64,000 bases of DNA from Mobula birostris (taxonomy: Eukaryota). Positions 28,255 through 62,238 of this stretch are shown one piece after another; positions within the stretch are counted from its first letter, which is position 1, and every line of letters begins with the position of its first letter. The notes under the pieces were generated by a model that was not told where the DNA came from, ran no database searches, and saw only the letters and a list, made by a program, of their open reading frames with translations. The translations under genes and the position numbers were made by a program. The DNA lies in the NCBI RefSeq assembly GCF_030028105.1, contig NC_092383.1:98045604-98109603 (forward strand), written 5' to 3'.

Positions 28255-28365
28255 TTATCTACGGGCTGCTTCTTCTCCAGCCGATCCAGGGGGTGGTCTG
28301 GCACGGAACGTGACTGCAGCGTACACTGTGTGGGGAGTCTCGGGGTGAACCTCAGGATCAACAAA
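28255..28365 (-). CDS. CD2/SLAM-family receptor, last coding exon (ITSM 2)
   Basis: Acceptor tccttctgttgcag| is phase 0 and matches the upstream donor. Encodes FVDPEVHPETPHTVYAAVTFRARPPPGSAGEEAARR*, with ITSM TVYAAV. Confidence 0.8.
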   Translation of the reverse strand, partial: FVDPEVHPETPHTVYAAVTFRARPPPGSAGEEAARR

Positions 28366-28823
28366 CTGCAACAGAAGGAAAGCCTGTCAGTCTCACACCA
28401 GTTCAGGGTTACACAGAGAAGGACATGGAGGCAGGGACAAAGATAGAGAGGACTTCAAGGAGATGGAACACCCAGAGTTAGGAGACACGGGACTGGACAT
28501 ACGGAGAGATGGACAGGGCACATCGGGAGAAAAACAAATGCAGAGAAACACACAACGGGACACAGACTCAATAGTTCCAGTCACCCCCACATCACCAATC
28601 ACAAAGTCCAAACACCGACACTGACCCAACATCAACACAACTTTCTATCTGAACAAACTGCTGACCAGTACAAACATTACATCCCGGTCTGATCATCAGA
28701 AATTACACAGAACTGGACATTAATGCAGAAGATTGTGCAGATGCTGGAAATGCACATAGCCGGACACAAACTGCTGGACGATCTCTGCAGGTCAGGCAAC
28801 ATCCATGGAAATGAAAAAAAAAC

Positions 28824-28859
28824 AGTTGATGTTTCAGTCCGAGACCCTTCATCAGAACT
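28824..28859 (-). ncRNA. Penelope-type minimal hammerhead ribozyme, partly degenerate
   Basis: RC reads agtt CTGATGA agggtctcggact GAAAC ATC aact. Stem I (agtt/aact) is intact; the palindromic ACGU has become ACAU. Confidence 0.55.
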
Positions 28860-28869
28860 GAGCCATATA

Positions 28870-31320
28870 TGGGGTGGACGACAGTGCATCCCAGTGGCTG
28901 GGTGTGTGGGGACAGTGTACCCCAGTGACTGGGTATGTGGGGGGACAGTGTACTCCAGTGACTGTGTGGGGGGGACAGTGTACCCCAGTGACTGGGTATG
29001 TGGGGGGACAGTGTACTCCAGTGACTGTGTGGGGGGGACAGTGTACCCCAGTGACTAGATGGGAGGAAGTGTACCCCAGTGACTGGTCATGTTGGGGACA
29101 GTGTACACCAGTGACTGGGTGTGTGATGGGTACAGTGTACCCAGGTGACTGGGTGTGTGGGGTAGTGTACCCCAGTAACTGGGTGGGGGGACAGTGTACC
29201 CCAGTGACTGGTTTGGGGGGACAGTGTACCCCAGTAACCTGGTGTGGGGAGGACAGTGTACCCCAGTGACTGGGTGTGTGTGGGACAGGTTCCGACAGCG
29301 ACTGGATATGTGGGGGACAGTGTACCTCAGTGACTGGGTGTGTGGGGAGACAGTGCACCCCAGTGACTGGGCATGTGTGGGGGACAGTTCACTCCAGTGA
29401 CTGGGCCTGTGGGGGACAGTGCACCCCAGTGACTGGGTGTGGCAGACAGTGTGCCCCAGTGACTGGGTGTGTGGGGGGGACAGTGCACCCCCTGGTGACA
29501 GGGTGTGTGTGGGACAGTTTCCCACAGTGACTGGATGTGTGGAGACAGTGTATCCCAGTGACTGGGTGTGTGGGGAGACAGTGCACCGCAGTGACTGGAC
29601 ATGTGTGGGGGACAGTTCACTCCAGTGACTGGGCCTGTGGGGGACAGTGCACCCCAGTGACTGGGTGTGGCAGACAGTGTGCCCCAGTGACTGGGTGTGT
29701 GGGGGGGACAGTGCACCCCCTGGTGACAGGGTGTGTGTGGGACAGTTTCCCACAGTGACTGGATGTGTGGAGACAGTGTATCCCAGTGACTGGGTGTGTG
29801 GGGAGACAGTGCACCCCAGTGACTGGACATGTGTGGGGGACAGTTCACTCCAGTGACTGGGCCTGTGGGGGACAGTGCACCCCAGTGACTGGGTGTGTGA
29901 GGGGACAGTGTACCTCAGTGACTGGCTGTGGCAGACAGTGTGCCCCAGTGACTGGGTGTGTGGGGGGGACAGTGCACCCCCTGGTGACAGGGTGTGTGTG
30001 GGACAGTTTCCCACAGTGACTGGATGTGTGGAGACAGTGTATCCCAGTGACTGGGCATGTGTGGGGGACAGTTCACTCCAGTGACTGGGCCTGTGGGGGA
30101 CAGTGCACCCCAGTGACTGGGTGTGTGAGGGGACAGTGTACCTCAGTGACTGGCTGTGGCAGACAGTGTGCCCCAGTGACTGGGTGTGTGGGGGGGACAG
30201 TGCACCCCCTGGTGACAGGGTGTGTGTGGGACAGTTTCCCACAGTGACTGGATGTGTGGAGACAGTGTATCCCAGTGACTGGGCATGTGTGGGGGACAGT
30301 TCACTCCAGTGACTGGGCCTGTGGGGGACAGTGCACCCCAGTGACTGGGTGTGTGAGGGGACAGTGTACCTCAGTGACTGGCTGTGGCAGACAGTGTGCC
30401 CCAGTGACTGGGTGTGTGGGGGGGACAGTGCACCCCCTGGTGACAGGGTGTGTGTGGGACAGTTTCCCACAGTGACTGGATGTGTGGAGACAGTGTATCC
30501 CAGTGACTGGGTGTGTGGGGGGACAGTTCACCCTAGTGACTGGGCCTGTGGGGGACAGTGCACCCCAGTGACTGGGTGTGTGAGGGGACAGTGTATGCCA
30601 GTGACTGTGTGGGGGGGCAGTGTACCCCAGTGACTGGCTGTGGCAGACAGTGTGCCCCAGTAACTGGGTGTGGGGACAATGTACCCCAGTTACTGGGTGT
30701 GTGTGGGACAGTGTACCTCGGTGACTGGGTGAGTGGGGACAGTGTACTCCAGTAACTGGATGTGGGGGGAACAGTGCATCCCGATGACAGGGTGCATGTG
30801 GGGCAGTTTCCCACAGTGACTGGATGTATGGGGGACAGTGTACCTCAGTGACTGGGTGTGTGGGGGGATAGTGCACCCCAGTGACTGGGTGTGTGGGGGG
30901 ATAGTGCACCCCAGTGACTGGGTGTGTGGGACGACAGTGCCCGCTGCTGACTGGGTGTTTGGGGACAGTGCACCCCAGTGACTGGGTGTGTGAGGGGACA
31001 GTGTATGCCATTTACTGTGTGGGAGGGGACAGTGTACCTCAGTGACTGGCTGTGGCAGACAGTGTGCCCCAGTGACTGGGTGTGGGGGGGACAGTGCACC
31101 CCCTGGTGACAGGGTGTGTGTGGGACAGTTTCCCACAGTGACTGGATGGGTGGGGACAGTGTATTCCAGTGACTGTGTGTGCGTGGGAGACAGTGCACCC
31201 CAATGTATATGGGGGGGACAGTGTACCCCAGTGACTGGGTGTGTGGGGGACAATTCAGCCCAGTTACTGGGTGTGGGGTGTGGGGTACAGTGTATGCAAG
31301 TGACTGGGCGCATGAGGGGG
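28870..31320. repeat. Large minisatellite (~30-34-bp unit gacagtgtaccccagtgactgggtgtgtgggg) with a 228-bp higher-order repeat
   Basis: Continuous tandem array. Near-identical ORFs start every 228 bp (29419, 29647, 29875, 30103, 30331). Confidence 0.95.
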
Positions 31321-31496
31321 TTGATGTGCCCTGACAACTGGGCACGTGGGGGTGGGGTGGGGGTGGTGTTGGGCATGTGGAGTGATTGGTTGGTATGGCA
31401 CGGTGATGGGTGATGGTGATGCTGATGGTGGTGTCAGTGGCCTGAGTGATTCAGGCTGCCTGTTCCCTGTCTCTGGCTTATCATGTCTGCCATTAC

Positions 31497-31585
31497 CCTC
31501 TCGTTCCCCTTGGGGGGCTGCTGGCCAGTGCGACTCTTTGCATTCCACCGAATATTTGCGTAAACAGTGTTCTCCGCTGCCGGGT
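31497..31585 (-). CDS. CD2/SLAM-family receptor, cytoplasmic exon (ITSM 1)
   Basis: Acceptor ctttctgtcccgcag| (phase 1). Encodes DPAAENTVYANIRWNAKSRTGQQPPKGNER, then donor |gtaatg (phase 0). ITSM TVYANI. Confidence 0.82.
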
Positions 31586-31750
31586 CTGCGGGACAGAAAG
31601 TAGAGGTGAGAGGCTCCATACGGAAACCCTTCCCCACTGTACCTTATCTCACCCCTCCCTCCAATGTCATCATTTTCCTCGACCTACCCTGCCCCACCCA
31701 TTCTCCCTCCCTCCCCACAACCACCAGCCTCACGGATTGGATCCACTTGC

Positions 31751-31894
31751 CTTCAGTGCCTGAAGACGTTTCTTTTCCAGCAGCTCTTCTCCTCCACGTG
31801 ACCAAGAGAATCACAATGAGAGTGGAGACCAGGAGGGCCCCCACTATGGACAGTCCGATCACCAGGGTCAGTCTCGAGGACACAGGATCTGCAT
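31751..31894 (-). CDS. CD2/SLAM-family receptor, transmembrane exon
   Basis: Acceptor ctctctgcttcccag|. Encodes DADPVSSRLTLVIGLSIVGALLVSTLIVILLVTWRRRAAGKETSSGTE. Donor is AG|GCAAGT, with an alternative in-frame GT donor at 31687. Confidence 0.88.
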
Positions 31895-32149
31895 CTGGGA
31901 AGCAGAGAGGACTCTGTGATTAATCCCAACCTCACATTCCCAGAGACGCAGAACCAATGGATTCATTCCATCCCATCTCAGGCCCGATAATATTCTTTGT
32001 TTCCCAAACACTGTACATCAATCGCCTCCAATCACCCCATCTCATTCCGTTCTCCTATCCCCTCAATCCCCCGCCATTCCCCTCGCATCACTCCCCTCCA
32101 ACCCCTCCTACACTATGGTGCTCCCATGATACACAAAGAGAGATTTTAG

Positions 32150-33065
32150 ACTAATTTATTTTTCTTTTCAAATCTTCTTATTGTTATATTATACAAAAAA
32201 AATGAGTACATTGAAGTAACAACACTTACAATGTCTCAAAAAAGACATTATCTTAAAGACTGAAAAAAAATTGTGATAACAAAAAAAACCTACTAAGCAG
32301 AAAAAGTGGGGGAAAGAACCCATTAGGTGTTCAACCCCGGAGCCATGCCTCATATAAAAAGCTTCTAAAGATAAACATCAAACTGCCAGCAAGAAAAGAA
32401 AATATACCAAAAAAATTTACAATTAGATCGTGGAAAAAATCTATCAATTAGCTCAAATGATAATAACGAGCAAATAAGCCCCATCTTTTCTGAAAATCAA
32501 ACAAAGGTTCAAAGGTTCGACTTCTAATTTTCTCCAAACTAAGACATAGCATCACTTGAGAGAACCATTGTGACAAATTGGGAGCTGATGTATCCTTCAA
32601 CTTCAACAAAATGGCCCTCCTAGCTATCAATGTACCAAATGCAATAACATTTTGGTCAGACACAGAAATACCATGAATATTTTGAGGAATTATTCCAAAA
32701 AGCACAGTTAATTTATTAGGTTGCAGATAAATTTTAAGTGCTTTAGAAATTGTTGAAAAAACTGACTTCCAGAACTGTTCCAATAAAGAACAAGACCAAA
32801 ACATATGTGTCAGTGTAGCTATCTCAGTTTTACATCTATCACAATAATTATCAACATTAGAAAATATTTTAGAAAGTCTCTCTTTCGTCAAGTGATAACG
32901 ATGTACAATTTTAAATTGAATCAATGAATGGCTCGCGCAAATTGAAGAAGAGTTAACCAACTTCAAAATCCGCATCCAATCCTCCGTCATAAAAGTCAAA
33001 TTAAGGTTCTTTTCCCAATCCTGTTTAATCTTAGATAAAGGACCCTTGATCGAAGGGTTCATACT
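32150..33065 (-). mobile_element. 5'-truncated L1/Tx1-type LINE (ORF2 C-terminal Zn-binding domain plus A-rich tail)
   Basis: ORF 32448-33062: LIQFKIVHRYHLTKERLSKI..CDRC..LTHMFWSC. A-rich end near 32150. Confidence 0.85.
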
Positions 33066-33344
33066 CTAACAGGTCAGGATTTGTGACGGTGATTAAGGAA
33101 ATGGCCGGGGAATTACACAAATACTTGTCTGTATTCCCAAACAAAAGCACAAACTATCCCAGACACACTGAAGACCCAGTGGCCTATTGATGGTATTTGT
33201 AATGGAAACTCAAACACACCAATGCAGCTGTTCTGACCACATGGACAGTTATCTTGTCAGACACACCCTTCGATCAATCTGATAATAATGTTCCAGAAAG
33301 TCGAAGATATGTATTTGATCTTTTATTAGCAACTGACAAAATAT

Positions 33345-36070
33345 ACGAGGCAGAGGAATGAAAAGTGAGGGAGTAGCATTGCTTGTTAGGGAAAATATTA
33401 CAGCAGTGCTCAGGCAGGACAGATTAGAGCGCTTGTCTACTGAGTCCTTATGGGTGGAGCTGAGAAACAGGAAAGGTATGGCCACATTAGTGGGATTGTA
33501 TTACAGACCACCCAATAGTCAACGAGAATTGGAAGAGCAAATCTGCAGAGAGATAGCAGGCAACTGCAGGAAACATAAAGTTGTGGTGATAGGGGATTTT
33601 AATTTTCCATATATTGATTGGGACTCCCATACTGTTAGGGGTGTAGATGGTTTAGAGTTTGTAAAATGTGTTCAGAAAAGTTTTCTAAATCAATATATAG
33701 AGGGACCAACTAGAGCGGATGAAATATTGGATCTCCTGTTAGGAAACGAGTTAGGACAAGTGACGGAGGTCTATGTAGGGGAGCACTTTGGTTCCAGTGA
33801 TCATAACACCATTAGTTTCAACTTGATCATGGACAAGGATAGATCTGGTCCTAGGGTTGAGGTTCTGAACTGGAAGGCGGCCAAATTTGAAGAAATGAGA
33901 GAGGATCTGAAAAGCGTAGATTAGGACAGGTTGTTCTCTGGCAAAGATGTGATCGGTAGGTGGGAAGCCTTCAAAGGGGAAATCTTGAGAGTGCAGAGTT
34001 TGTATGTTCCTGTCAGGATTAAAGGTAAAGTGAATAGGAATAAGGAACCTTGGTTCTCAAGGGATATTGCAACTCTGATAAAGAAGAAGAGGGAGTTGTA
34101 TGACATGTATAGGAAACAGGGAGTAAATAAGGTGCTTGAGGAGTATAAGAAGTGCAAGAAAATATTTAAGAAGGAAATCAGGAGGGCTAAAAGAAGACAT
34201 GAGGTTGCCTTGGCAGTCAAAGTGAAGGATAATCCAAAGATCTTTTACAGGTATATTAAGAGCAAAAGGATTGTAAGGGATAAAATTGGTCCTCTTGAAG
34301 ATCAGAGTGGTCGGCTATGTGCAGAACCAAAGGAAATGGGGGAGATCTTAAGTAGGTGTTTTGCGTCTGTATTTACGAAGGAAACTGGCATGAAGTTTAT
34401 GGAATTAAGGGAAACAAGTAGTGAGATCATGGAAACTGTACAGATTGAAAAGGAGGAGGTGCTTGCTGTCTTGAGGTAAATTAAAGTGGATGAATCCCCA
34501 GGACCTGACAGGTGTTCCCTCGGACCTTGAAGGAGACTAGTGTTGAAATTGCAGGGGCCCTGGCAGAAATATTTAAAATGTCGCTGTCTACAGGTGAGGT
34601 GCCGGAGGATTGGAGAGTGGCTCATGTTGTTCCATTGTTTAAAAAAGGATTGAAAAGTAATCCGGGAAATTATAGGCCAGTAAGTTTAACGTCGGTAGTA
34701 GGTAAGTTATTGGAGGGAGTACTAAGAGACAGAATCTACAAACATTTGGATAGACTGGGACTTATTAGGGAGAATCAACATGGCTTTGTGCGTGGTAGGT
34801 CATGTTTGACCAATCTATTGGAGTTTTTCGAGGAGGTTACCAGGAAAGTGGATGAAGGGAAGGCAGTGGATATTGTCTACATGGACTTCAGTAAGGCCTT
34901 TGACAAGGTCCCTCATGGGAGGTTAGTTAGGAAAATTCAGTCGCTAGGTATACATGGAGAGGTGGTAAATTGGATTAGACATTGGCTCAATGGAAGAAGC
35001 CAAAGAGTGGTAGTAGAGAATTGCTTCTCTGAGTGGAGGCCTGTGACTAGTGGTGTGCCACAGAGATCAGTGCTGGGTCCATTGTTATTTGTCATCTATA
35101 TCAATGATCTGGATGATAATGTGGTAAATTGGATCAGCAAATTTGCTGATGATACAAAGATTGGAGGTGTAGTAGACAGTGAGGAAGGTTTTGAGAGCCT
35201 GCAGAGGGACTTGGACCAGCTGGAAAAATGGGCTGAAAAATGGCAGATGGAGTTTAACACAGACAAGTGTGAGGTATTGCACGTTGGAAGGACAGACCAA
35301 GGTAGAACATACAGGGTTAATGGTAAGGCACTGAGGAGTGCAGTAGAACAGAGGGATCTAGGAATACAGATACAAAATTCCTTAAAAGTGGTGTCACAGG
35401 TAGGTAGGGTCGTAAAGAGAGCTTTTGGTACATTGGCCTTTATTAATCGAAGTATTGAGTATAAGAGCTGGAATGTTATGATGAGGTTGTATAAGGCATT
35501 GGTGAGGCCGAATCTGGAGTATTGTGTTCAGTTTTGGTCACCAAATTACAGGAAGGATATAAATAAGGTTGAAAGAGTGCAGAGAAGGTTTACAAGGATG
35601 TTGCCGGGACTTGAGAAACTCAGTTACAGAGAAAGGTTGAATAGGTTAGGACTTTATTCCCTGGAGTGTAGAAGAATGAGGGGAGATTTGATAGAGGTAT
35701 ATAAAATTATGATGGGTATAGACAGAGTGAATGCAAGCAGGCTTTTTCCACTGAGGCAAGGGGAGAAAAGAAACAGAGGACATGGGTTAAGGGTGAGGGG
35801 GGAAAAGTTCAAAGGGATCATTAGGGAGGGCTTCTTCACACAGAGAGTGGTGGGAGTATGGAATGAGCTGCCAGGCGAGGTGGTAAATGCAGGTTCTTTT
35901 TTAACATTTAAGAATAAATTGGACAGATACATGGATGGGAGGTGTGTGGAGGGATATGGTGCGTGTGCAGGTCAGTGGGACTAGGCAGAAAATGGTTCGG
36001 CACAGCCAAGAAGGGCCAAAAGGCCTGTTTCTCTGCTGTACTTTTTCTGTGGTTTCTATGGTTTCTATAC
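33345..36070 (+). mobile_element. CR1 LINE with nearly complete ORF2 (APE+RT), two lesions
   Basis: ORFs 33358-33924 and 33931-34479 are in frame across a TAG. 34512-35984 follows after a stop/frameshift. Tail ggtttctatggtttctat. Confidence 0.95.
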
Positions 36071-36565
36071 AATCTTGGAGCAATGTAATTAAATGCAGTC
36101 CCCAGCTATAAACTGCCGACAACAAAGTCTGAACATATATCTAAACCCTTCATTTTCACCACACCCTCCCACGTGAATAGCTACCATGACAAACATAATA
36201 ACCGTGCAACACGGGCTACAATGCTGATTAAAATAGATGCCTGGTGTCTACAGTATTAATACAGATGGATAAATACCACGGTCACAACAATCTAATCACA
36301 GAGCTTGGGTGAGGGATCTGCTGGGGTACTGAATGACCTAGCTATCATCTTCCAAACATTTACAGGTTCTGGAACGGTTCCGCTGACTGGAAAGAATTTA
36401 ATGTCACTGTTTCAGAAAGGAGACAGACATAGAGAGAACAAACAGGGAACTACTGACCTGTTGGGTTGACTCTGGAAGTTGGCACAGTGGTGGAATCTGT
36501 GATAATGAATGTGATATCAGGATATTTAGAAAATATTTCCATGACTGGACAAAGATACTATGTTT

Positions 36566-38940: not shown

Positions 38941-38999
38941 ACCAGGTTCTGGAGTGGTCTAGTTCTGTCCTTAATCTTTCCAAATATCCACTTTTGATC

Positions 39000-40740: not shown

Positions 40741-41272
40741 TGTGAAGAGGCTTCTCAATAGACCAACAGTGTAGAGTCTGCAGTGGAGGCTATCAGGAAC
40801 ACTTCAAGTCACATTGTAGCTGCATTCACCACTACCAAGAAATTTGTGCCCATGAATGATCTGGCAAAAGCCACATGAATCCACTGTTAGGGCAATGCAG
40901 GCCATTCCCAAGGATGCTGGTGTGCAGCTCTTGGCATCTTCTGGATATGTTGGCATCCTGTACAGTCCATGGTTACTTGCTCAATCTGCTAATGTATCCT
41001 AGACCACCAGACAAAGATTCAAGCCAATGCTTTCATTTTCACCACACCTAGATGACTGGCATGTATCTCCTCCAACACTTTAGCTCTCAGCTTTGATAGT
41101 ACAACAGCTCTCAATCCTCAATGGTAACCTCTGCTCTACAGTACACGACCAGGTAGTGTCAGAGAGCAGGATAGATCGAGACTGAAGGTCCTCTACTCTG
41201 TCCTGTCACTCACTCCTGGGACAGGGTAACCACCCTCCTCTCTAAATCCCAACTTCTTCCTCTGATGCTCAC

Positions 41273-43045: not shown

Positions 43046-43816
43046 GATAGAACTATTGTTGGTAGAATCTCAGATGGTGACGAGAGGACGTACAGGAGCG
43101 AGATATGCCAACCAGTGGAGTGGTTCCACAGCAACAACCTGGCACTCAGTGTCAGTAAGACGAAAGAGCTGATTGTGGACTTCAAGAAGGGTAAGATGAA
43201 GGACCACATACCAATCCTCATAGAGGGATCAGAAGTGGAGAGAGTGAGCAGCTTCAAGTTCCTGGGTGTCAAGATCTCTGAGGATCTAACCTGGTCCCAA
43301 CATATCGATGTAGTTACGTTTGTATAAAGAAGGCAAATCAGCGGCCATACTTTATTAGGAGTTTGAAGAGATTTGGCATGTCAACAAATACACTCAAAAA
43401 CTTCTATAGTTGAACCGTGGAGAGCATTCTGACAGGCTGCATCACTGTCTGGTATGGAGGGGCTACTGCACAGGACCAAAAGAAGCTGCAGAAGGTTGTA
43501 AATCTAGTCAGCTCCATCTTGGGTAATCACCTACAAAGTACCCAGGACATCCTCAAGAAGCGGTGGCTCAGAAAGGCAGTGTCCATTATTAAGGACCTCC
43601 AGCACCCAGGGCATGCCCTTTTCTCACTGTTACCATCAGGAAGGAGGTACAGAAGCCTGAAGGCACACACTCAGTGATTCAGGAACAGCTTCTTCCCCTC
43701 TGCCATCCGATTCCGAAATGGACATTGAAGCTTTGGACACTACCTCACTTTTTTTTAATATGCAGTATTTCTGTTGTTGCACATTTTTTAATCTATTCAA
43801 TATACATAATAGATTT
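43045..43816 (+). mobile_element. Rex1/Babar-like LINE RT C-terminus; its tail resumes at 47160-47277
   Basis: [35 protein letters not shown] and LLPSGRRYRS motifs. Confidence 0.85.
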
Positions 43817-43868
43817 CAAAGTTGCTGGTGAATGCAGCAGGCCAGGCAGCATCTCTAGGAAGAGGTAC

Positions 43869-43904
43869 AGTCGACGTTTCAGGCCGAGACCCTTCGTCAG
43901 GACT
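43869..43904 (-). ncRNA. Penelope-associated minimal type-I hammerhead ribozyme, intact core
   Basis: RC: agtc CTGACGA agggtctcggcct GAAAC GTC gact. Stem I agtc/gact, short stem II, palindromic ACGU helix III, GUC cleavage triplet. Confidence 0.75.
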
Positions 43905-45059
43905 AACTGAAGGAAGAGTGAGTAAGAGATTTGAAAGTGGGAGGGGGAGGGGGAGATCCAAAATGATAGGAGAAGACAGGAGGGGGAGGGATGGAGCCAA
44001 CAGCTGGACAGGTGATAGGCAAAAGGGATATGAGAGGATCATGGGACAGGAGGCCCAGGGAGAAAGATGGGGGGGGAGGGGAAACCCAGAGGTTGGGCAA
44101 GGGGTATATTCAGAGGGACAGAGGGAGAAAAAGGAGAATGAGAGAAAGAATGTGTGTATAAAAATAAGTAACAGATGGGGTACGAGGGGGAGGTGGGGCA
44201 TTAGCGGAAGTTAGAGAAGTCGATGTTCATGCCATCAGGTTGGAGGCTACCCAGACGGAATATAAGGTGTTGTTCCTCCAACCTGAGTGTGGCCTCATCT
44301 TTACAGTAGAGGAGGCCGTGGATAGACATGTCAGAATGGGAATGGGATGTGGAATTAAAATGTGTGGCCACTGGGAGATCCTGCTCTCTCTGGCAGACAG
44401 AGCGTAGGTGTTCAGCAAAGCGGTCTCCCAGTCTGCGTCGGGTCTCGCCAATATGTAAGGGGCCACATCGGGAGCACCGGACGCAGTATATCACCCCAGC
44501 CAACTCACAGGTGAAGTGTCGCCTCACCTGGAAGGACTGTTTGGGGCCCTGAATGGTGGTAAGGGAGAAAGTGTAAGGGCATGTGTAACACTTGTTCCAC
44601 TTACACGGATAAGTGCCAGGAGGGAGATCAGTGGGGAGGGATGGGTGGTCGAATGAACAAGGGAGTTGTGTAGGGAGCGATCCCTGTGGAATGCAGGGGG
44701 GGGAGGGAAAGATGTGCTTAGTGGTGGGATCCCGTTGGAGGTGGCTGAAGTTACGGAGAATAATAAGTTGGTCCCGGAGGCTGGTGGGGTGGTAGGTGAG
44801 GACCAGGGGAACCCTATTCCTAGTGGGGTGGCGGGAGGATGGAGTGAGAGCAGATGTACGTGAAATGGGGGAGATGCGTTTAAGAGCAGAGTTGATAGTG
44901 GAGGAAGGGAAGCCCCTTTCTTTAAAAAAGGAAGACATTTCCCTCGTCCTAGAATGAAAAGCCTCATCCTGAGAGCAGATGCGGCGGAGACGGAGGAATT
45001 GCGAGAAGGGGATGGTGTTTTTGCAAGAGACAGGGTGAGAAGAGGAATGGGGGCCGGCG

Positions 45060-45370
45060 CTTTATTTTCACCATGGATGTCCCGTCCCTGGCCTCCACCG
45101 CTTTATTTTCACCATGGATGTCCCATCCCTAGCTCCCACCGCTTTATTTTCACCATGGATGTCCAGTCCCTGGCCCCCACCACTTTATTTTCACCATGGA
45201 TGTCCCATCCCTGGCCCCCACAGCTTTATTTTCACCATGGATGTCCAGTCCCTGGCCCCCACCACTTTATTTTCACCATGGATGTCCCATCCCTGGCCCC
45301 CACAGCTTTATTTTCACCATGGATGTCCAGTCCCTGGCCCCCACCGCTTTAGTTTCACCATGGATGTCCA
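45060..45370 (+). repeat. 41-bp x8 minisatellite derived from the Penelope RT motif
   Basis: ATGGATGTCC recurs every 41 bp from 45073 to 45360. The last copy runs into the genuine FTMDVQSLYTSIP coding sequence. Confidence 0.92.
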
Positions 45371-47012
45371 GTCCCTATATACTTCCATCCCCCTCAGGAA
45401 GGTCTCAAAGCTCTCCGCTTCTTTTTGGATTCCAGACGTAATCAGTTCCCCTCTACCACCACTCTGCTCCGTCTAGCGGAATTAGTCCTTACTCTTAATA
45501 ATTTCTCCTTTGGCTCCTCCCACTTCCTCCAAACTAAAGGTGTAGCTATGGGCACCCGTATGGGTCCTAGCTATGCCTGCCTTTTTGTTGGTTTTGTGGA
45601 ACAATCTATGTTCCGTGCCTATTCTGTTATCTGTCCCCCACTTTTCCTTCGCTACATCGATGACTGCATTGGCGCTGCTTCCTGCACACATGCAGAGCTC
45701 GTTGACTTTATTAACTTTGCCTCCAACTTTCACCCTGCCCTCAAGTTTACCTGGTCCATTTCCGACACCTCCCTCTCCTTTCTAGATCTTTCTGTCTCTG
45801 TCTCTGGAGACAGCTTATCCACTGAAGTCTACTAAAAGCCTACTGACTCTCACAGCTATCTGGATTATTCTTCTTCTCACCCTGTCTCTTGCAAAAACAC
45901 CATCCCCTTCTCGCCATTCCTCCGTCTCCGCCGCATCTGCTCTCAGGATGAGGCTTTTCATTCTAGGACGAGGGAGATGTCCTCCTTTTTTAAAGAAAGG
46001 GGCTTCCCTTCCTCCACTATCAACTCTGCTCTTAAACGCATCTCCTCCATTTCACGTACATCTGCTCTCACTCCATCCTCCCGCCACCCCACTAGGAATA
46101 GGGTTCCCCTGGTCCTCACCTACCACCCCACCAGCCTCCGGGTCCAATATATAATTCTCCGTAACTTCCGCCACCTCCAACGGGATCCCACCACTAAACG
46201 CATCTTCCCCTCCCCACCTCTCTCTGCTTTCCGCAGGGATCGCTCCCTACGCGACTCCCTTGTTCATTCGTCCCCCCCATCCCTCCCCACTGATCTCCCT
46301 CCTGGCACTTATCCGTGTAAGCAGAACAAGTGCTACACATGCCCTTACACTTCCTCCCGTACCACCATTCAGGGCCCCAAGCAGTCCTTCCAGGTGAGGC
46401 GACACTTCACCTGTGAGTTGGCTGGGGTGATATACTGCGTCCGGTGCTCCCGATGTGGCCTCTTACATATTGACGAGACCCGACGCAGACTGGGAGACCG
46501 CTTTGCTGAACACCTACGCTCTGTCTGCCAGAGAAAGCAGGATCTCCCAGTGGCCACACATTTTAATTCCACATCCCATTCCCATTCTGACATGTCTATC
46601 CACAGCCTCCTCTACTGTAAAGATGAAGCCACACTCAGGTTGGAGGAACAACACCTTATATTCCGTCTGGGTAGCCTCCAACCTGATGGCATGAACATCG
46701 ACTTCTCTAACTTCCGCTAATGCCCCACCTCCCCCTCGTACCCCATCTGTTACTTATTTTTATACACACATTCTTTCTCTCACTCTCCATTTTCTCCCTC
46801 TGTCCCTCTGAATATACCCCTTGCCCATCCTCTGGGTCCCCCCCCCCCATCTTTCTTCCCGGACCTCCTGTCCCATGATCCTCTCGTATCCCTTTTGCCT
46901 ATCACCTGTCCAGCTCTTGGCTCCATCCCTCCCCCTCCTGTCTTCTCCTATCATTTTGGGTCTCCCCCTCCCTCTCCCACTTTCAAATCTCTTACTCACT
47001 CTTCCTTCAGTT

Positions 47013-47048
47013 AGTCCTGACGAAGGGTCTCGGTCTGAAACGTCGACT
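47013..47048 (+). ncRNA. Penelope-associated minimal hammerhead ribozyme, intact core
   Basis: agtc CTGACGA agggtctcggtct GAAAC GTC gact. Confidence 0.75.
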
Positions 47049-47479
47049 GTACCTCTTCCTAGAGATGCTGCCTGGCCTGCTGCGTTCACCAGCAACTTTT
47101 ATGTGTGTTGCTTAAATTTACAGCATCTGCAGAATTCCTGTTGTTTACGTAATAGATTTACTTGTTTTATTATTATTTTTGTCTCTCTGCTAGATTATGT
47201 ATTACATTGAACTGCTGCTGCTAAGTTAACAAATTTCACGTCACATGCTGGTGATAATAAACCTGATTCTGATTCTGATCAGGACTGGAAAAAAGATGAG
47301 AAGTTGGAGCAGGGAGGTGGGTGAGGGGAGAAAGAAGTAGAAGGATGCTGTTCGGCTCCAGGTTCTTGATTTAAGACTGTTTCTTAAGAACATACAGAGT
47401 GAATTGTCCCGCTGTATCAGGGATTTTTAATGCACATGTCACCTTTAAAACTTCATGCAATGCATATCAATTTAACGAC

Positions 47480-48010
47480 ATCAATGGAAAAGAGTACAGT
47501 CGATGTTTCAGGCCAAGACCCTTCTGTAGGACTGGAGAAAAGAAATGAGGAATACATTCAAAAGGTGGGGAGGGAGAGAGAAACACAAGGTGATAGGTGA
47601 AACCGGGAGGGGGAGGAGTGAAGTAAAGAGCTGGGAAGTTGATTGGTGAAAGAGATACAGGGCTGGAGAAGGGGGAGTCTGATAGGTGGGGATAGAAGGC
47701 CATGGAAGAAAGAAAATAGAAACATGGAAAACATAGAAAATAGATGCAGGAGTAGGCCATTCGGCCCTTTGAGCTTGCACCGCTATTCAGTATGATCATG
47801 GCTGATCATCCAACTCATCCAAATGGGGGAGGAACACCAGAGGGAGGCGATGGACAGGCAAGGAGGCAAGGTGAGAGAAGGAAAAGCAGATGGGGACCAG
47901 TGAAGGAGAGGGCAACTTCCATTACCGGAAGTTTGAGAAATCAGAAATCCCTTTCTCTCAATTTCTCCATCTCCTCCATCTCTATCACATCTGCTCTCAG
48001 AATGAGGCTT
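47480..48010 (-). mobile_element. Penelope terminal fragments with an embedded CR1 tail (47715-47820)
   Basis: Degenerate hammerhead at ~47495-47530. The CR1 tail matches the type at 20340-20432. Confidence 0.65.
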
Positions 48011-48012
48011 TT

Positions 48013-50345: not shown

Positions 50346-50349
50346 TCGT

Positions 50350-52170: not shown

Positions 52171-52171
52171 A

Positions 52172-54140: not shown

Positions 54141-54827
54141 ACATCAACTATACCTACCCTGAACACTCCGTGGTGACTATTGACCCCGTACCCACCGATA
54201 TACGTACCCACGAGACACCGCGCACTCCAAACCCTACACAGACACCACACGACACTCCCATACTGGGTGCGATGCACACGCACGAGGGATTACCAACGCC
54301 TAATGTGCTGGCAGCTCAAGTCAGGCCGGAGCCAGCACAACCGCCGTGCGACACATGGGGGCAGCCATCTTGGTCGGCGCCACCTCCCACTGCCTACGAC
54401 CAACGGTGCTCACGGGGCACCCCACCGCACCGGACCAAGACAGCGGCCCAACCCTGGCTTCCGTGACCCTCGACCAAAGCGCTCTCCACCAGCTCAATGA
54501 TGGACATCCTGGGGGAGGGGCGCAGGACAAGCTGCCTGTTTGACACGGGCAGCACGGAGAATTTTATCCACCCAGGCACGGTGCAACATTGCGGACTCAT
54601 GATATGGCCGGTAAGTCAAAGGGTCACCATGGCTTCCGGGTCGCATACAACAGACATCCGGGGGGGTGGTTGTGTAGCGACGCTAGTGGTGCAGGGCAAA
54701 CAATATCGAGACTTTACGTTACTGGTCATGTTTCAACTGTGTGCCCCTGTGCTATTGGGGCTCGACTTCCAGAGCCACCTGAAAAGAGTGACAATGGAGT
54801 ATGATGGACCCCTCCCACCAATTACTG

Positions 54828-55758
54828 TCGACCTGGATGTGGGGGTAGGAGGGTGGGTTGGCAAGTTTGCAGACGACACAAAGGTTGTTGGTGTTGTAGA
54901 TAGTGTAGAGGATTGTCAAAGATTGCAGAGAGACATTGATAGGATGCAGAAGTGGGCTGAGAAGTGGCAGATGGAGTTCAACCCAGAGAAGTGTGAGGTG
55001 GTACACTATGGAAAGACAAACTCCAAGGCAGAGTACAAAGTAAATGGCAGGATACTTGGTAGTGTGGAGGAGCAGAGGGATCTGGGGGTACGTGTCCACA
55101 GATCCCTGAAAGTTGCCTCACAGGTAGAAAGGGTAGTTAAGAAAGCTTATGGGGTGTTAGCTTTCATAAGTTGAGGGGTAGAGTTTAAGAGTTGCGATGT
55201 AATGATGCAGCTCTATAAAACTCTGGGTAGGCCACACTTGGAGTACTGTGTCCAGTTCTGGTCACCTCACTATAGGAAGGAATCGGAAGCATTGGAAAGG
55301 GTACAGAGGAGATTTACCAGGATACTGCCTGGTTTAGAGAGTATGCATTATGATCAGAGATTAAGGGAGCTAGGGCTTTACTCTTTGGAGAGAAGGAGGA
55401 TGAGAGGAGACATGATAGAGGTGTACAAGATATTAAGAGGAGTAGATAGAGTGGATAGCCAGCGCCTCTTCCCCAGGGCACCACTACTCAATACAAGGGG
55501 ACATGGCTTTAAGGTAAGGGGTGGGAAGTTCAAGGGGGATATTAGAGGAAGGTTTTTTACTCAGAGAGTGGTTGGTGCGTGGAATGCACTGCCTGAGTCA
55601 GTGGTGGAGGCAGTTACACTAGTGAAGTTTAAGAGACTACTAGACAGGTATATGGAGGAATTTAAGGTGGGGGCTTATATGGGAGGCAGGGTTTGAGGGT
55701 CGGCACAACATAGTGGGCCGTAGGGCCTGTACTGTGCTGTACTATCCTATGTTCTATG
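54828..55758 (+). mobile_element. CR1 3' fragment inserted between Gypsy protease and RT
   Basis: KFADDTK through a ctatgttctatgt tail. Very similar to 3325-4256. Confidence 0.92.
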
Positions 55759-58350
55759 TAAATTCCCGGTTTTGTAGAGATATGTCACGTACCCCGCTAC
55801 TGACCGCACACACACACCGTCCCGCGCATCCCACCCAACATCATGCCAACTGCCACACTACCGACGCCACTTGCGGCCTCTCCACCCTCAGGATCCCTCC
55901 CCCACCGCTGTTCGCCAACCTGACCCCCGACTGTAAACCTGTGGCAACTAAAAGCAGGAGGTACAGCGCGGGGGACAGAGCTTTCATTAAGTCGGAGGTG
56001 CAGCGGCTGCTCAGGGAGGGGGTCATTGAGGCAAGCACAAGTCCTTGGAGGGCGCAGGTGGTCGTTGTTCGGAACAGGGAGAAGAATAGGATGGTCGTGG
56101 ACTATAGCCAGACCATCAATAGGGTCACGCAGCTCGACGCGTACCCCCTACCCCGCATCGCGGATATGGTCAATCAGATAGCACAGTACAAGGTGTACTC
56201 AGCCATAGACCTAAAATCCTCTTACCATCAGCTCCCCATCCACCGGGAGGACCACCCTTACACTGCCTTCGAGGCAGACGGCAGGCTTTATCAATTCCTG
56301 CGCGTCCCCTTTGGTGTCACGAATGGTGTATCTGTCTTCCAGAGGGCAATGGACCGGATGGTGGACCAGTGCCAACTGAAGGCCAGGTTCCCATATCTGG
56401 ATAACATCACCATCTGTGGTCAGGACCGGCAGGATCATGACAACAACCTCCAAATATTTCTCCAAGCGGCCAAAGCCTATAACAAGGACAAGTGTGTATT
56501 CGGGACCACCCGGCTTGCTATCCTTGGGTGTGTCGTGGAGAAAGGAGTCATTGGCCCTGACCCCGACCGTATGCGCCCCTTGTTGGAACTCCCTCTTCCC
56601 AACACCCTCAGAGCCCTCAAAAGGTGCCTGGGCTTCTTTTCATATTACGCCCAATGGGTCTCTAACTACGCAGACAAGGCCCGCCCCCGGTCAAGTCCAC
56701 CACATTCCCCCTCTCAGCCGAGGCCCACGCGGCCTTCAACCGCATAAAAGGGGACATTGCCAAAGCAGCAATGCATGTGGTGGATGAGGCCATTCCCTTC
56801 CAAGTAGAGAGTGACGCCTCCGACTTTGCACTGGCTGCTACCCTCAACCAGGCGGGAAGACCGGTGGTGTTCTTCTCCCGTACCCTTCAAGGCCCTGAAA
56901 TTCGGCACTCTGCAGTGGAGAAAGAGGCCCAGGCCATAGCGGAAGCTATTAGGCACTGGAGGCACTATCTCACCGGCAAAAGGTTCACCCTGCTAACTGA
57001 CCAGCGCTCAGTCGCATTCATGTTTAGCAAACAACAGCGGGGCAAAATCAAAAATGATAAAATTCCGAGGTGGAGAATCGAACTCTCCACCTACAACTAT
57101 GACATCATGTACAGGCCTGGGAAGCTCAACGAGCCCTCCGATGCTCTATCCCGGGGAACGTGCGCCAGCGCGCAGATCGACCGGCTGTACGCCCTACATG
57201 TAGGTCTTTGCCACCCGGGGTCACCCAGCTTTTCCACTTTGTGAGAGCCCGGAACCTGCCTTACTCCCTTGAGGAGATCAGGACGATGACCAGGGACTGC
57301 CAAGTCTGCGCAGAGTGCAAACCGCACTTCTACTGACCCAAAAAGGCACCACCCATCAAGGCCACCCGCCCCTTTGAGCGACTGAGTGTTGACTTTAAGG
57401 GCCCCCTTCCCTCCTCCGACCGCAATGTGTACTTTCTTAACGTTATTGCCCAGTACTCACGGTTTCCCTTCGCCATCCCCTGCCCCGACACCACTACCAC
57501 GTCAGTTATAAAAGCCCTGCGCAAGCTCTTCACTCTGTTCGGATACCCATGCTATATCCACAGTGACAGAGGGTCCTCGTTTATGAGTGACGAGCTGTGC
57601 CAATATCTACTGGCTAGGGGAATTGCAACCAGTAGGACCACGAGCTATAATCCCTGGGGGAATGGACAGGTGGAGAAGGAGACTGGCACGGTGTGGAAAG
57701 CCACACTCTTAGCCCTCAGGTCAAAGGGATTGCCGGTCTCCCACTGGCAGGAGGTCCTTCCCGAGGCACTCCACTCCATCCGCTCCCTGTTATGCACGTC
57801 CACCAATGCCACCCCTCATGAGCGGCTCTTTTCTTTTCCCAGAAAATCGACCACTGGAACCACCCTACCAACTTGGCTGACGTCCCCGGGGCCAGTGCTG
57901 CTTCGGAAACATGCGAGGAGCAATAAATACTCCCCGATAGTCGAGAGGGTTCACTTACTTCATGCGAACCCCCAGTATGCCTACGTGGTTTTACCTGATG
58001 GGCGGGAGGACACGGTCTCCATCCGCGACCTGGCGCCCGCAGGAGCTCCGGGCCCCTACCCTGAACACTCCGTGGTGACTATTAACCCCGTATCCACCGA
58101 TGTATATACCCATGAGACACCGCACGACACTCCCACACCGGGAGCAACGCACACGCAGGAGGGATTACTGACACCTAACGTGCTGGCACCTGAAGTCAGG
58201 CCAGAGCCAGCACAACCGCCATCGCCGGTGCTACGTAGATCACAGCGACGGACTCGACCGCCTGATAGACTTGACCTGTAAATATACTTCTTGTAAATAT
58301 TGTCAGTCACTTCACCCCGCGGGACTCTTTTTTAAAAAAGGAGGGGTGAA

Positions 58351-58579
58351 TGTGGTAAACCATGTATATATGTTGTAACTCGGTTACCTGTCTGGACGCA
58401 CCCCTCTGCTGACTGCCCCTGTGGCTCCTCCCACAGAGTCCTGTATAAAGGTGTTCGTCTTGCCCCTCCCCCTCAGTCCGGGGGCAGACACTCACTGTGG
58501 AGGTCGTATTGTACAGTGAATAAAAGCCTTTCAGTATTTTACCCAACCTCAGTCTTTTGGAGTAATTGAAGGTGCTTCA
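58351..58579 (+). mobile_element. Gypsy 3' LTR (229 bp)
   Basis: Follows the PPT aaaaaggaggggtgaa. TG...CA ends, tataaa at ~58445, aataaa at 58519. Confidence 0.85.
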
Positions 58580-59659
58580 GGTGGGCATCCATCGTTAAGG
58601 ATCCCCACCGCCCAGGACAGGCCCTCTTCACACTGTTACCGTCAGGTAGGAGGTACAGGAGCCTGAAGGTACACACTCAGCGATTCAGGAACAGCCTCCT
58701 CCCCTCTGCCATCCAATTCCTAAATAGATATTGAACCCGTGAACACTATCTACTGTCACTATATTTTTTTATTTATTTTGCATTACTTATTTTAACTTAA
58801 CTACTTAATAGACGTGTATATATTTAATGTAACTCAGTTTTTTTCTCTATATTTATTTATCATGTGTTACCATGTACCGCTGCCGTAAAGTTAACAAATT
58901 TCAAGACATATGCCAGTGATGTTAAATCTGATTCCAGTTATGACTGTATCGAGGTGGCAGGGCCTCGGCCCGAGAGTGAAGGACGACCCGAGGTTTGACC
59001 AATTTAAGTGCCGGGCTGAATTGGAAAGGTTGGGTACAGGCCAACTCGAGGCAGTGAGGCACGGACCCGAGGGTGTATCCAAACAGCAGTATCTTGTCCA
59101 AGAGTGAGGAATGAGCTGATGTTTGGACGATTTACGTGCCGGCCAGATTGTAAAGGTCAGGGTGTTGGGGTCAAAGGTAAGGTACAGGCCAGTGTTCACC
59201 ACGCTGCACAGTGAGATTTACTCATCTCTGTGCTGAACTGAGGCTGCGGCCTACAATTATCAGGCTCCTGGATCAGCTTCAGTGATGCCTGGCTTCGTGG
59301 CTGTGGACTCACTTTCAGGATCTTCCGTTCTGAATGTTATTTGCTTACTTTCATTGTTCACACAATTTTTTTTACTGCACATTGGGTGTTTGACGGTCTT
59401 TTCTTAATGGGTCCTATTGGGTTTCTTTGTTTTGTGGCTGCCTGTAAGGAGACGAATCACAAAGAGATATATATATAATAAAAATACTTTGATAATAAAT
59501 GTATTTTGAACTTTAACCTACTAACTGGTAGATCTTGGGTTGTGGTACATTTGTTTAGATTGGAAACAGGCAACAAGAGGGAGTAAAGGAAACATTTTAA
59601 CATCATGATGAATTACTGGAAGAGTGAGTCAGCAGAGATTTGTTGAAGTTGTTATGGCC

Positions 59660-60160
59660 GGGGTTGGTAGTGGGGATAATCTTCCACCACCTATGAAATG
59701 CTCCCAATGGTGTGTGTCTCAAATACCTCTGACAACCAAGTCCAGCTCCTGACCTTCACGTGTGGGTCAGCTACTAAGCTCAGTGGAACAGTTTCTACCG
59801 ACAGGTAAAGGGGTAAAGGTGGGTTAATTCAGCAGGTTAAACCAGTGGCTTTGGCAGATGGAGAAAGAAAAGTCTGATCTCAAACCTCAACGGATTTGCG
59901 ACTATACCCACTCATGGGGAAGGCTTCAGGGAAACGTCTGGAGCTGGAGTGCCTAAGGCTGTTGACTTTAATGTCTGGTAACCCCAGCGACACTGCTGGT
60001 GCCAAACTGTATTGGATCTGCCATTCCTTTGGGTTCATCAGATGTGTGGAGAGGGATCTTGCTGCACGGGCAACAGCTTGCTCTCCATATTGTACTGTCC
60101 AGGCTTGTGTATCCAGACAGCTAGGAGGCAATATCCATGGTCAACCCTGGCCAATGGAGG
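59660..60160 (+). mobile_element. Non-coding interspersed repeat, possibly an RTE-clade 5'UTR
   Basis: Recognised by general resemblance only; no coding motif. Confidence 0.3.
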
Positions 60161-60233
60161 CCTCTGAGTCAGGGACCATATTGCTGTGTGTGAGTGTGCT
60201 GTGTCACTCACTGGGACACTATATTCAGTGTAA

Positions 60234-61096
60234 TGTTACATGCCTCATGGATATCTTGTGATTGTTTTATGAGGATGATGTAATGGTCTTGCGGAGGTCA
60301 CATGATGTAATTTTCCCGCCGATGTCAGGTCAAGTGATGACCTGTTCTCACCAGGTATGTAAGTGTGGATCCCTGGTGACGCAGTTAGTTTTCCAGTTAG
60401 AACGTTAGCCAGATACTCCGCTCCACTGCGTATTTGTTTTATGACACAGTTTCCATTTAGAACGGAGTTTTGGGTTCTATTGTAAGGTACAACAGTGTTG
60501 GGCTGGCAGTTTAATCAATTGCTGCCAGGTTTGTTGATGTATCTCTCCAGTAGTGTTGGAGAGTGAAGACAAGGACCTGAAGGAGTTGTTCGACGGTTGA
60601 AAGGATCGACCATTATTGAATTTGTTCAAGAAAGACTGATCTGCATGAGATAGCCTCTGCTAAAAGTGGCAGGAAAGGCTGTGCAGGATCTAGTATCCAG
60701 AAGGATAGGTCAGTGCCTTTAAACCGTTTTATTTCCGTTGTCGTGAATCCTGCGGATAAGGCAGGATCTGGATGGGACTGGCCTGATGTCGTGTCTTCGT
60801 GGAATTATTTGCTTCAGGGAAGTCTCTCCTAATTGACTGTATAAATCTCTTGGACTTTCGAATTTACCATTCTAAGAACTGTGTTTGAATTTACTGCTTT
60901 AAGAACTGTTCTCGCATTTATCACTTTAAGAACTAGTACTGAGTGGCGGTTTGTTAAATGGCCGCATGGTAGTTTACTTCCGATTAAGATTTTCGTTTGT
61001 TTTTTTTATATTGAGCAGAATTTAATAAATGTTTGATTGTTTTTATAAAACCTGACTCAACTCAATTCTATATTCATTGTTGCCGGTCACGTGATA
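60234..61096 (+). mobile_element. Solo LTR with a 4-bp TSD
   Basis: tgttaca...gtgata (degenerate CA), flanked by gtaa at 60230-60233 and 61097-61100. aataaa at ~61024. Confidence 0.7.
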
Positions 61097-61439
61097 GTAA
61101 TGAACACACAGGGTCTCACCCAGCACAGCACAGCATGAAGGCTGAGGAACAAACACTTTGCTGAGCTCAGACCTCAGTCTGGAGAAGTCACAAGCAGTGC
61201 CCTCGGAAAATGGGATCCCTGAACATGACAGACCAGGCCTTTGACTGGAGATACAGTGTGTGAAAACAGATACAGACTGTTCAGGCCATTCACACCAGGT
61301 CCATTCTCCCTGTGTGCTGAGCTCCCTCCGTCTCAGGTACATGAGATTCCCCAATGTTGGTTCGATCCCTTCCGGCTCCTGTCTCAGTTTCGGTGGATGT
61401 GACGGGTGTGTCCTCCAAACTCACACTGACTCAGCCTCA

Positions 61440-61780
61440 CTACACTGGGACCGTGTGAATAGTCAGAGGCTTTTCCCCAGGGCTGAAATGGTTCCCACAG
61501 AGGACACGGGTTTAAGGTACTGGGGAGTAGGTACAGAGGAGATGTCAGGGGTAAGTTTTTTACACAGAGAGTGGTGAGTGCGTGGAATCGGCTGCCGGCA
61601 ACAGTGGTGCAGGCAGATACGATAGGGTCTTTTCAGAGATTTTTGGATAAGTACACGGAGCTTAGCAAAATAGGGTAAGGTCCTATGGGTAAGCCTAGTA
61701 ATTTCTAAGGCAGGGACATGTTTGGCACAACTTTGTGGGCCAAAGATCCTGTATTGTGCTGTAGGTTTTCTATGTTTCTA
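61440..61780 (+). mobile_element. CR1 3' fragment
   Basis: cagaggcttttccccagg..cagagagtggtgagtgcgtggaat segment and a tttctatgtttctatg tail. Confidence 0.8.
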
Positions 61781-61914
61781 TGAGCCCAGCTCTGGACACG
61801 GACAGTCAGTGGGGCTCAGTAAACAGGGGAACACACAGGATCTGCCCTCAGCCAGTAATTAGGAGTGTTTCAGGAACCGGTGAAACCTGAGCCCCTCCGC
61901 AGTGTCTTACTCAC

Positions 61915-62238
61915 CGTACACCTCCAGTCGCACTGTTGTTATACTTTCAGCTCCTGAAACTGCTGCTGCAAACATCACCTCGTAATCACCAGAGTCCTCT
62001 CTCCGTAGATCATGGATTTCCAGACTGAAGTTCCCAGGATGAAAGGTTATCCGTCGCTTGTACTCGTCAGGACCGAAGTAGCTAACGTTACCCTTCGAGT
62101 ACTTCACTATCATGTTTCTGGGTGATACCCGTCTCCACACAACATCAGCAACGTCCGGTCCGACTGGGATCCCAGGATGTAAGGAGACCGAGTGTCCCCG
62201 AGCTCTGTTCACGGTGGTCGGGGGAGCCCCAGTCCCAG
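61915..62238 (-). CDS. CD2/SLAM-family receptor, Ig V-set exon
   Basis: 324-bp phase 1-1 exon (ctcttgtctcctcag| and |gtgagt). Encodes ..SVSLHPG..VVWRR..RITFHPGNFSLEIHDLRREDSGDYEV..LEVY. It has no B-F disulfide, as is typical of CD2/SLAM V domains. Splicing to the C2 exon gives LEVYEPVS. Confidence 0.93.

Follow-up and report, generated by a model that had tools for sequence, protein, structure and literature searches.

Lying on the minus strand of a 64,000-nucleotide stretch of Mobula birostris DNA (contig NC_092383.1, positions 98,045,604 to 98,109,603; this whole stretch is referred to below as the window) are a number of exons which an earlier note, drawn up from the letters alone, had joined into a hidden CD2/SLAM-family immune receptor carrying two ITSMs (immunoreceptor tyrosine-based switch motifs). 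The locus raises the questions of whether these exons belong to a single gene, whether that gene is new, and what form of receptor it specifies. Very probably, the window contains every coding exon but the leader of one M. birostris gene, that of RefSeq protein XP_072133953.1, situated within a large tandem CD2/SLAM expansion of sharks and rays. The relevant exons were located by reading the minus-strand DNA and joined in a script, and all six coding exons in the window proved to be open with intact splice sites:

62238-61915, minus strand, V-set immunoglobulin (Ig) exon, 324 nt, phase 1-1, acceptor ...ctcctcag, donor gtgagt

41560-41273, minus strand, C2-set Ig exon, 288 nt, phase 1-1, acceptor ...gtcacag, donor gtgagc, absent from the RefSeq model

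36496-36458, minus strand, stalk mini-exon, 39 nt, phase 1-1, encoding (D)STTVPTSRVNPT, acceptor ...tatcacag, donor gtcagt

31894-31751, minus strand, transmembrane exon, 144 nt, phase 1-1, AG acceptor and GC donor (AAG/GCAAGT)

31585-31497, minus strand, cytoplasmic exon 1, 89 nt, phase 1-0, with the first ITSM, TVYANI (ENTVYANI at 31551-31574)

28365-28255, minus strand, cytoplasmic exon 2, 111 nt, phase 0 to a TAA stop at 28257-28255, with the second ITSM, TVYAAV (PHTVYAAV at 28312-28335)

26227..26252, minus strand, two AATAAA hexamers about 2 kb 3' of the stop, which we infer to be candidate polyadenylation signals

Joining five of these exons (V, C2, transmembrane and the two tail exons) yielded 318 codons plus a split first codon, with zero internal stops. 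The five minus-strand exons put forward by the earlier note, with their AG acceptors, compatible phases and frame of approximately 318 codons ending at 28255, were all confirmed, as was the proposed LEVYEPVS linker: LEVY closes the open V-like frame at 61916, EPVS and NPVS sit in the open C2-like frame 41561-41325, and LEVY/EPVS spans the V/C2 junction. The exons and phases of that model accordingly stand, while the model itself was incomplete, the 39-nt stalk exon having been missed and the C2 exon being included in no public model.

A HMMER search of 1.84 billion representative proteins conducted with the V exon returned a protein of 255 aa (P0008) that was 100% identical over all 107 residues (E 1.3e-65), and which is RefSeq XP_072133953.1, "CD48 antigen-like [Mobula birostris]", a record carrying no LOW QUALITY flag whose gene spans 57,001 bp of a 99.8-Mb chromosome of GCA_030028105.1. 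This protein comprises, in order, a leader located outside the window, the V exon (residues 22-128, 100% identical), 13 residues DSTTVPTSRVNPT, and then exactly the transmembrane exon and the two tail exons of the window, which together account for its C-terminal 113 residues. Cytoplasmic exons 2 and 1 both agree with the RefSeq protein at 100% identity, the former at its C-terminus, and the latter is 86-93% identical to homologues in four ray species. These exon matches are far beyond chance, and the RefSeq model thereby backs four of the five exons initially proposed (V, transmembrane and both ITSM exons) together with the GC-donor junction. The description of the gene as hidden consequently fails, since it was already annotated over a 57-kb span, whereas the guess of a cartilaginous-fish host was right, the record being from Mobula birostris. 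The find is a correct and fairly ordinary one, the gene being one of dozens of similar shark and ray genes.

The RefSeq leader peptide was not found in six frames of the whole window, nor was any ATG-initiated hydrophobic phase-1 exon found in 62239-64000, in agreement with the prior suspicion that the leader might lie past 64000. From the gene span of 57,001 bp and the candidate polyadenylation signals near 26.2 kb, the leader is expected some 19-21 kb past the end of the window. A tblastn comparison of each exon with the window, looking for further Ig exons such as would indicate either a Ly9-like V-C2-V-C2 build or a second gene, recovered only the exons themselves.

The stalk exon was traced from the 13 extra residues of the RefSeq protein and lies between the C2 and transmembrane exons, where it is the most Ser/Thr/Pro-rich of 36 possible 39-nt phase-1 exons. 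A second stalk cassette in the same interval was considered and set aside: the next candidate is similarly Ser/Thr/Pro-rich and lacks RefSeq support, 36496-36458 being the only one that is RefSeq-confirmed.

The transmembrane/tail junction, ...SSGTE-D-PAAEN, is present in XP_072133953.1 and in homologues (paralogues plus likely orthologues) of four ray species, and its occurrence in the RefSeq protein means that the GC donor is needed. A GT donor (TCC/GTGAGG) is located 17 nt downstream of the GC donor (window 31732-31751, minus strand). Deployment of this GT donor (31733) would give phase 0, place the next exon out of frame and lead to a stop after 30 codons with no ITSM, and it was rejected as the principal form, given that the GC junction is the one found in the RefSeq protein and in the homologues of four species.

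As a separate observation, the model of a Hypanus paralogue (P0013) ends with ...SETESKWM just past the equivalent of the transmembrane-exon donor, and has the appearance of donor read-through. Gene predictors may mishandle the GC-AG junction across the elasmobranch SLAM-like family.

With regard to the encoded protein, the V exon matched Pfam V-set (1.2e-8), with weak Receptor_2B4 and SLAM matches, and contains no Cys in its 107 residues, DSGDYEV replacing the canonical DxGxYxC; two N-glycosylation sequons are present. The C2 exon matched Pfam Ig_3 (1.3e-6) and also ig/I-set, and contains four Cys aligned with the four Cys of its paralogues, the Trp of FRWW, the NPVS motif and two further N-glycosylation sequons. 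The transmembrane exon encodes a juxtamembrane DADPVSS, a hydrophobic segment of approximately 25 residues, an RRR stop-transfer and the start of the tail, which extends to 80 residues and carries two TxYxx[V/I] motifs, one per exon, with their tyrosines 36 residues apart. Each of the features previously claimed for the protein (the Cys-less V, the four-Cys C2 with NPVS, the transmembrane segment with RRR, ENTVYANI and PHTVYAAV) was thus present in the joined frame. It is highly likely that the product is a type I membrane glycoprotein with a disulfide-less V tip, a short Ser/Thr/Pro stalk, a single membrane span followed by RRR, and a two-ITSM tail.

Whether the ectodomain of this receptor also includes the C2 domain is the question on which the public record and the DNA part company. 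The C2 exon is intact, with 95 open codons, consensus AG/GT splice sites, the right phase, and its four Cys and Trp kept, and shares 85% identity with its counterpart in the neighbouring paralogue P0169. When polarised with three outgroup sequences, unique C2 substitutions numbered five in the window gene versus three in P0169, and the end branch of the window gene in a C2-only tree was 0.098 versus 0.081 and 0.090 in two expressed relatives; on these comparisons of sequence, the exon gives no sign of acceleration or relaxed constraint. The balance of the evidence leans towards some transcripts including C2, thereby giving a classical V-C2 ectodomain.

A number of points nevertheless weigh against such inclusion. 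The sole public transcript model, that of RefSeq, is the V-stalk form, from which the C2 exon is omitted, and no C2-containing product of the window gene was found when 5.8 billion proteins were searched with P0008. V-stalk-transmembrane models with the same tail occur in Hypanus sabinus (P0227) and Hemitrygon akajei (P0229), and V-only SLAM-like genes are found in Mobula (P0009/P0228), the existence of these models making a V-only product plausible. Furthermore, the window gene is sister to P0169 (support 96/92), with an M. hypostoma gene as the next branch; given so recent a duplication, an unused C2 could still be intact by chance, and its intactness is consequently weak evidence of use. 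Taken together, these points give a serious claim, if one falling short of probable, to the reading that the RefSeq model is complete, such that only a V-stalk-transmembrane-ITSM receptor is made and C2 is a recently abandoned exon which has yet to decay. To the same effect, several of the unique C2 substitutions fall at otherwise conserved positions, including loss of an NFT sequon and a change from WGHGE to WGIGE. Set against a relic status are the preserved reading frame, splice sites and structural residues, the substitution counts and branch lengths given above, the retention of C2 by every isoform of the sister gene, and the fact that automatic models of this family are often incomplete, as exemplified by P0013. 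Inclusion of C2 in at least some transcripts is for these reasons retained as the preferred reading.

The second question of function concerns the tail. ITSMs conform to the consensus TxYxxV/I/L and have SAP and EAT-2 as their primary partners, in competition with SHP-1, SHP-2 and SHIP (PMC3958483), and high-affinity SAP binding needs a hydrophobic residue at the position preceding the phosphotyrosine (pY-1) (PMC12151841, citing Poy et al. 1999). As had been claimed, the tail motifs match the SLAM-type consensus, TVYANI and TVYAAV being located on separate exons. In each of the manta motifs, Thr occupies -2, the hydrophobic residue Val sits at -1 and Val/Ile at +3, a combination that SAP favours, and both motif positions are conserved in Mobula, Hemitrygon and Hypanus homologues. 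These data confirm that a batoid possesses receptors of the SLAM type whose switch motifs take the canonical form favoured by SAP.

On the analogy of SLAM receptors in mammals, an expressed receptor would bind through its V domain, either to itself or to a paralogue, on another leukocyte, both tail tyrosines would be phosphorylated by Src-family kinases, and the phosphorylated motifs would then recruit either activating single-SH2 adaptors of the SAP/EAT-2 type or inhibitory SHP-1, SHP-2 or SHIP. It counts against this scheme that the adaptor-binding step is drawn purely from that analogy. An alternative, which we regard as unlikely, is that the tail serves only as an inhibitory docking site for SHP-1/SHP-2/SHIP, equivalent to an ITIM (immunoreceptor tyrosine-based inhibitory motif), with no SAP-dependent switch. 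The stingray orthologues have TEYAAV as their second motif, in which pY-1 is Glu, as it is in PD-1; it has been argued that this form would probably not serve as a SAP switch (PMC12151841). One species has the ITIM IVYADI as its first motif, and mammalian ITSMs also bind phosphatases (PMC3958483). By way of contrast, both Mobula motifs read T-V-Y-x-x-[V/I] with the hydrophobic pY-1 residue favoured by SAP (PMC12151841), and an sh2d1a-like gene is expressed in shark T cells (PMC11372145). Judged from these motif sequences, the balance between switch and purely inhibitory signalling may differ among lineages, the manta tail being read here as a putative switch.

Family matches extended to roughly 90 proteins from 15 species of sharks and rays, at least 15 of which are encoded on the same 99.8-Mb manta chromosome, with consecutive accessions XP_072133947-133959 around the window gene. 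Among 78 family proteins bearing a transmembrane segment, 34 have at least one TxYxx[V/I] motif and 21 have two or more, basking shark, catshark and sevengill shark being represented. The sister gene, P0169 (XP_072133955.1, "SLAM family member 8-like isoform X2"), lies on the same chromosome and has the full V-C2-stalk-transmembrane-two-ITSM build; window exons other than C2 are 89-94% identical to it, with the transmembrane and tail exons within that range. Alternative use of a first exon and the skipping of two 13-aa (39-nt) stalk cassettes distinguish its three RefSeq isoforms (P0236/P0169/P0237), all of which keep C2, and a Hypanus relative (P0167) has three such 13-aa cassettes. The stalk length of these receptors is therefore set by duplicated, optional phase-1 mini-exons.

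In a cluster of such fast turnover, the window gene might be silent or on its way to becoming a pseudogene, and two observations accord with this: no transcript-derived (Logan) protein matches it, and its huge introns are crowded with retroelements and a 2.4-kb minisatellite. This explanation is nonetheless improbable, since the six coding exons in the window have retained open frames and intact splice sites, the tail and transmembrane exons are close in identity to the sister gene and the motifs have been preserved, the end branch is short (0.075), and RefSeq treats the locus as a normal protein-coding gene with no quality warning.

Assignment of the gene to the CD2/SLAM family rested on profile, fold and gene-structure comparisons. 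In PDB searches the exons were submitted singly. The V exon alone matched CD48 (8e-4), SLAMF6, SLAMF5 and CD2, all ranked below weak partial MXRA8 matches (residues 40-105), and the best match for the C2 exon alone was CEA (1.7e-7). A family profile (A2) built from 30 elasmobranch sequences was also compared with the PDB, and gave single stretches over both domains of 61.1 bits with CD2 (1hnf) and 58.8 bits with SLAMF6 (2if7), followed by 57 bits with CD48/CD2 and 55.6 bits with CD48; the best CEACAM1 stretch scored 34.2 bits, and it was only in the summed profile score, a total over repeated domains, that CEACAM1 came top. When the same profile was compared with a large database and only non-elasmobranch matches were considered, these consisted of duck SLAMF1 (3.7e-26), other bird SLAMF1 fragments, a 2B4-like protein and a zebrafish CEACAM5-like protein.

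The corresponding fold comparison was conducted on the AlphaFold2 model of paralogue P0169 as a proxy (85-89% identical) rather than on the product of the window gene itself, which tempers its support for the family assignment; its block-mean predicted local distance difference test (pLDDT) values were >90 across most of V and 53-94 across C2. The top eight Foldseek matches in the PDB were 2dru (CD48/CD2), 2if7 four times (NTB-A), 1hng and 1hnf (both CD2), and 1ccz (CD58), with template modelling (TM) scores of 0.78-0.83 and root-mean-square deviations of 2.6-3.4 A; CEACAM1 was placed 14th or lower (TM 0.69-0.71). In the relevant tree, all 37 sampled elasmobranch sequences grouped together and apart from bird SLAMF1 and 2B4, at a fork that was weakly supported (84/68) and with the two bird sequences on long branches.

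On the basis of profile, fold, the four-Cys C2, the layout of one domain per phase-1 exon and the tandem cluster, the gene belongs to the CD2/SLAM family. It cannot be assigned as the orthologue of any one mammalian member. Both of these conclusions bear out the earlier note: PDB profile and fold matches were best to CD2-family members, the nearest non-elasmobranch sequences were SLAMF1/2B4-like, and the tree sets the elasmobranch sequences apart with weak support. That the gene might instead derive from the CEACAM or another Ig superfamily branch is scarcely credible. In favour of that reading are the best PDB match to the C2 exon alone (CEA), the lead of CEACAM1 in the summed profile score, the absence of the disulfide from CEACAM N domains as well, the ITIM/ITSM tail of CEACAM1 and the automatic naming of some paralogues as CEACAM5-like or HEPACAM2-like; against it, the per-stretch scores of 59-61 bits for CD2/SLAMF6 versus 34 for CEACAM1, the eight CD2-family ectodomains leading the fold search, the CD2/SLAM pattern of four Cys in C2 and the SLAMF1 identity of the nearest non-elasmobranch sequences all speak for CD2/SLAM.

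Comparison with mammalian SLAM receptors (SLAMF1/CD150, SLAMF6/NTB-A, SLAMF5/CD84, SLAMF3/Ly9, SLAMF4/2B4 and SLAMF7) revealed a common plan of disulfide-less V, four-Cys C2, single transmembrane segment, phase-1 one-domain exons, a pair of TxYxx[V/I] motifs, each on its own exon, and membership of a tandem paralogue cluster. The manta gene differs from them in having no 1:1 orthologue, an extra exon for a 13-aa stalk cassette, a GC-AG intron after the transmembrane exon, and a public model that lacks C2; we know of no mammalian SLAM receptor with a V-only, C2-less architecture. Its likeness to CD48 (SLAMF2) consists of a CD2-family ectodomain, with CD48 among the best PDB matches to V and 2dru the top fold match. 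CD48 is a glycosylphosphatidylinositol (GPI)-anchored protein with no cytoplasmic tail, whereas the manta gene encodes a transmembrane segment, RRR and the 80-residue ITSM tail in place of a GPI anchor, and the CD48 label given by RefSeq is accordingly wrong in kind. CEACAM1, too, begins with a V domain that lacks the disulfide, has NPVS-like motifs in its C2 domains and ends in an ITIM/ITSM tail, but the C2 domains of CEACAMs have one disulfide as against four Cys in the manta C2, and their per-domain sequence and fold scores lie below those of CD2/SLAM proteins. The closest equivalents are elasmobranch, namely P0169, the M. hypostoma "Ly-9-like" protein (P0163), Hemitrygon P0164/P0165 and Hypanus P0167, each with leader, V, C2, stalk, transmembrane segment and two-ITSM tail at 75-94% identity per exon; these form a clade with the window gene (support 97/93), and their models include C2 where that of the window gene does not.

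The names attached to these sequences vary widely. One well-supported clade of five members has been auto-named CD48-like, SLAMF8-like, Ly-9-like, SLAMF5-like and 'uncharacterized'; the 88% identical sister gene is "SLAM family member 8-like" and its M. hypostoma orthologue "Ly-9-like", while more distant members are auto-named HEPACAM2-like, CEACAM5-like, NCAM2-like, hemicentin-like and unc-89-like. Such automatic names are best-hit labels without orthology information, and the case of CD48-like, SLAMF8-like and Ly-9-like for near-identical genes shows how both names and exon models mislead in this family.

The V exon exhibited a pattern of relationship different from that of C2. Its best match, at 92%, is the V of P0190/P0241, a neighbouring gene whose C2 is 70% identical and whose short tail is unrelated, and the V domains of the neighbouring manta genes compared with the window V exon (P0190/P0241, P0174, P0169 and P0009) are 85-92% identical. 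The tails of this cluster are of three kinds: the window gene and its sister have two ITSMs, P0190/P0241 has a short tyrosine-free tail, and P0009 has a mucin stalk plus one ITSM. In a V-only tree, five neighbouring manta genes with three membrane/tail modules grouped by species (83/94), as did the stingray genes (94/98), whereas a C2-only tree grouped by gene type across species, both trees being built on short domains with moderate supports. Such a pattern suggests, and would be expected of, paired receptors whose V exons undergo gene conversion or are selected together. Tentatively, the window gene may thus belong to a paired-receptor module in which V exons are homogenised or co-selected across the cluster and combined with differing C2, membrane and tail modules. 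Were this the case, one ligand specificity would feed into switch, null and decoy outputs alike, and receptors differing in height would arise in addition from the optional use of C2 and stalk. The CEA family has been described as holding paired receptors with homogenised N domains; for SLAM receptors, we know of no description of a paired-receptor system.

With respect to wider significance, the gene is a new member of a known large expansion and of low to moderate interest. The importance given to it by the earlier note, as a switch receptor in the oldest lineage with adaptive immunity, was overstated: SLAM-like genes with ITSMs are abundant in shark and ray annotation, and published work already places slamf genes on the elasmobranch MHC (major histocompatibility complex) chromosome (PMC10751288), Slamf6 in nurse-shark T follicular helper (Tfh)-like cells (PMC10529500) and sh2d1a-like expression in bamboo-shark T cells (PMC11372145). 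With slamf genes, Slamf6 expression and sh2d1a-like thus known from sharks, no long-standing question is opened. The practical gains are small, consisting of a corrected exon map, to which the stalk exon has been added and in which an intact C2 absent from RefSeq is recorded, a GC-AG intron that apparently trips other models of the family, and a lead on V-exon homogenisation.

The remaining features of the window are intronic or lie downstream of the gene:

33358-35981, plus strand, intronic endonuclease and reverse transcriptase of a long interspersed nuclear element (LINE)

55713-56744, plus strand, intronic reverse transcriptase, forming with the following integrase an element of the long terminal repeat type at 55713-58278

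57427-58278, plus strand, intronic integrase

19144-19605, plus strand, reverse transcriptase fragment downstream of the gene

761-4190, plus strand, open reading frame (ORF) for a GDSL-esterase/OSK domain with reverse-transcriptase fragments, downstream of the gene, an esterase-bearing LINE

32451-33062, minus strand, zf-RVT fragment, a retroelement remnant

28880-31308, minisatellite of 2.4 kb with a 32-bp G-rich unit, about 76 copies, a 228-bp higher-order period and 75-84% matches

An Rfam scan gave no match in the window at gathering thresholds and none with E up to 1 in 43500-47500, and two long ORFs in that same interval had no Pfam match. The minisatellite fills most of the last intron, and in so doing accounts for the long spurious ORFs at 28852-31376.

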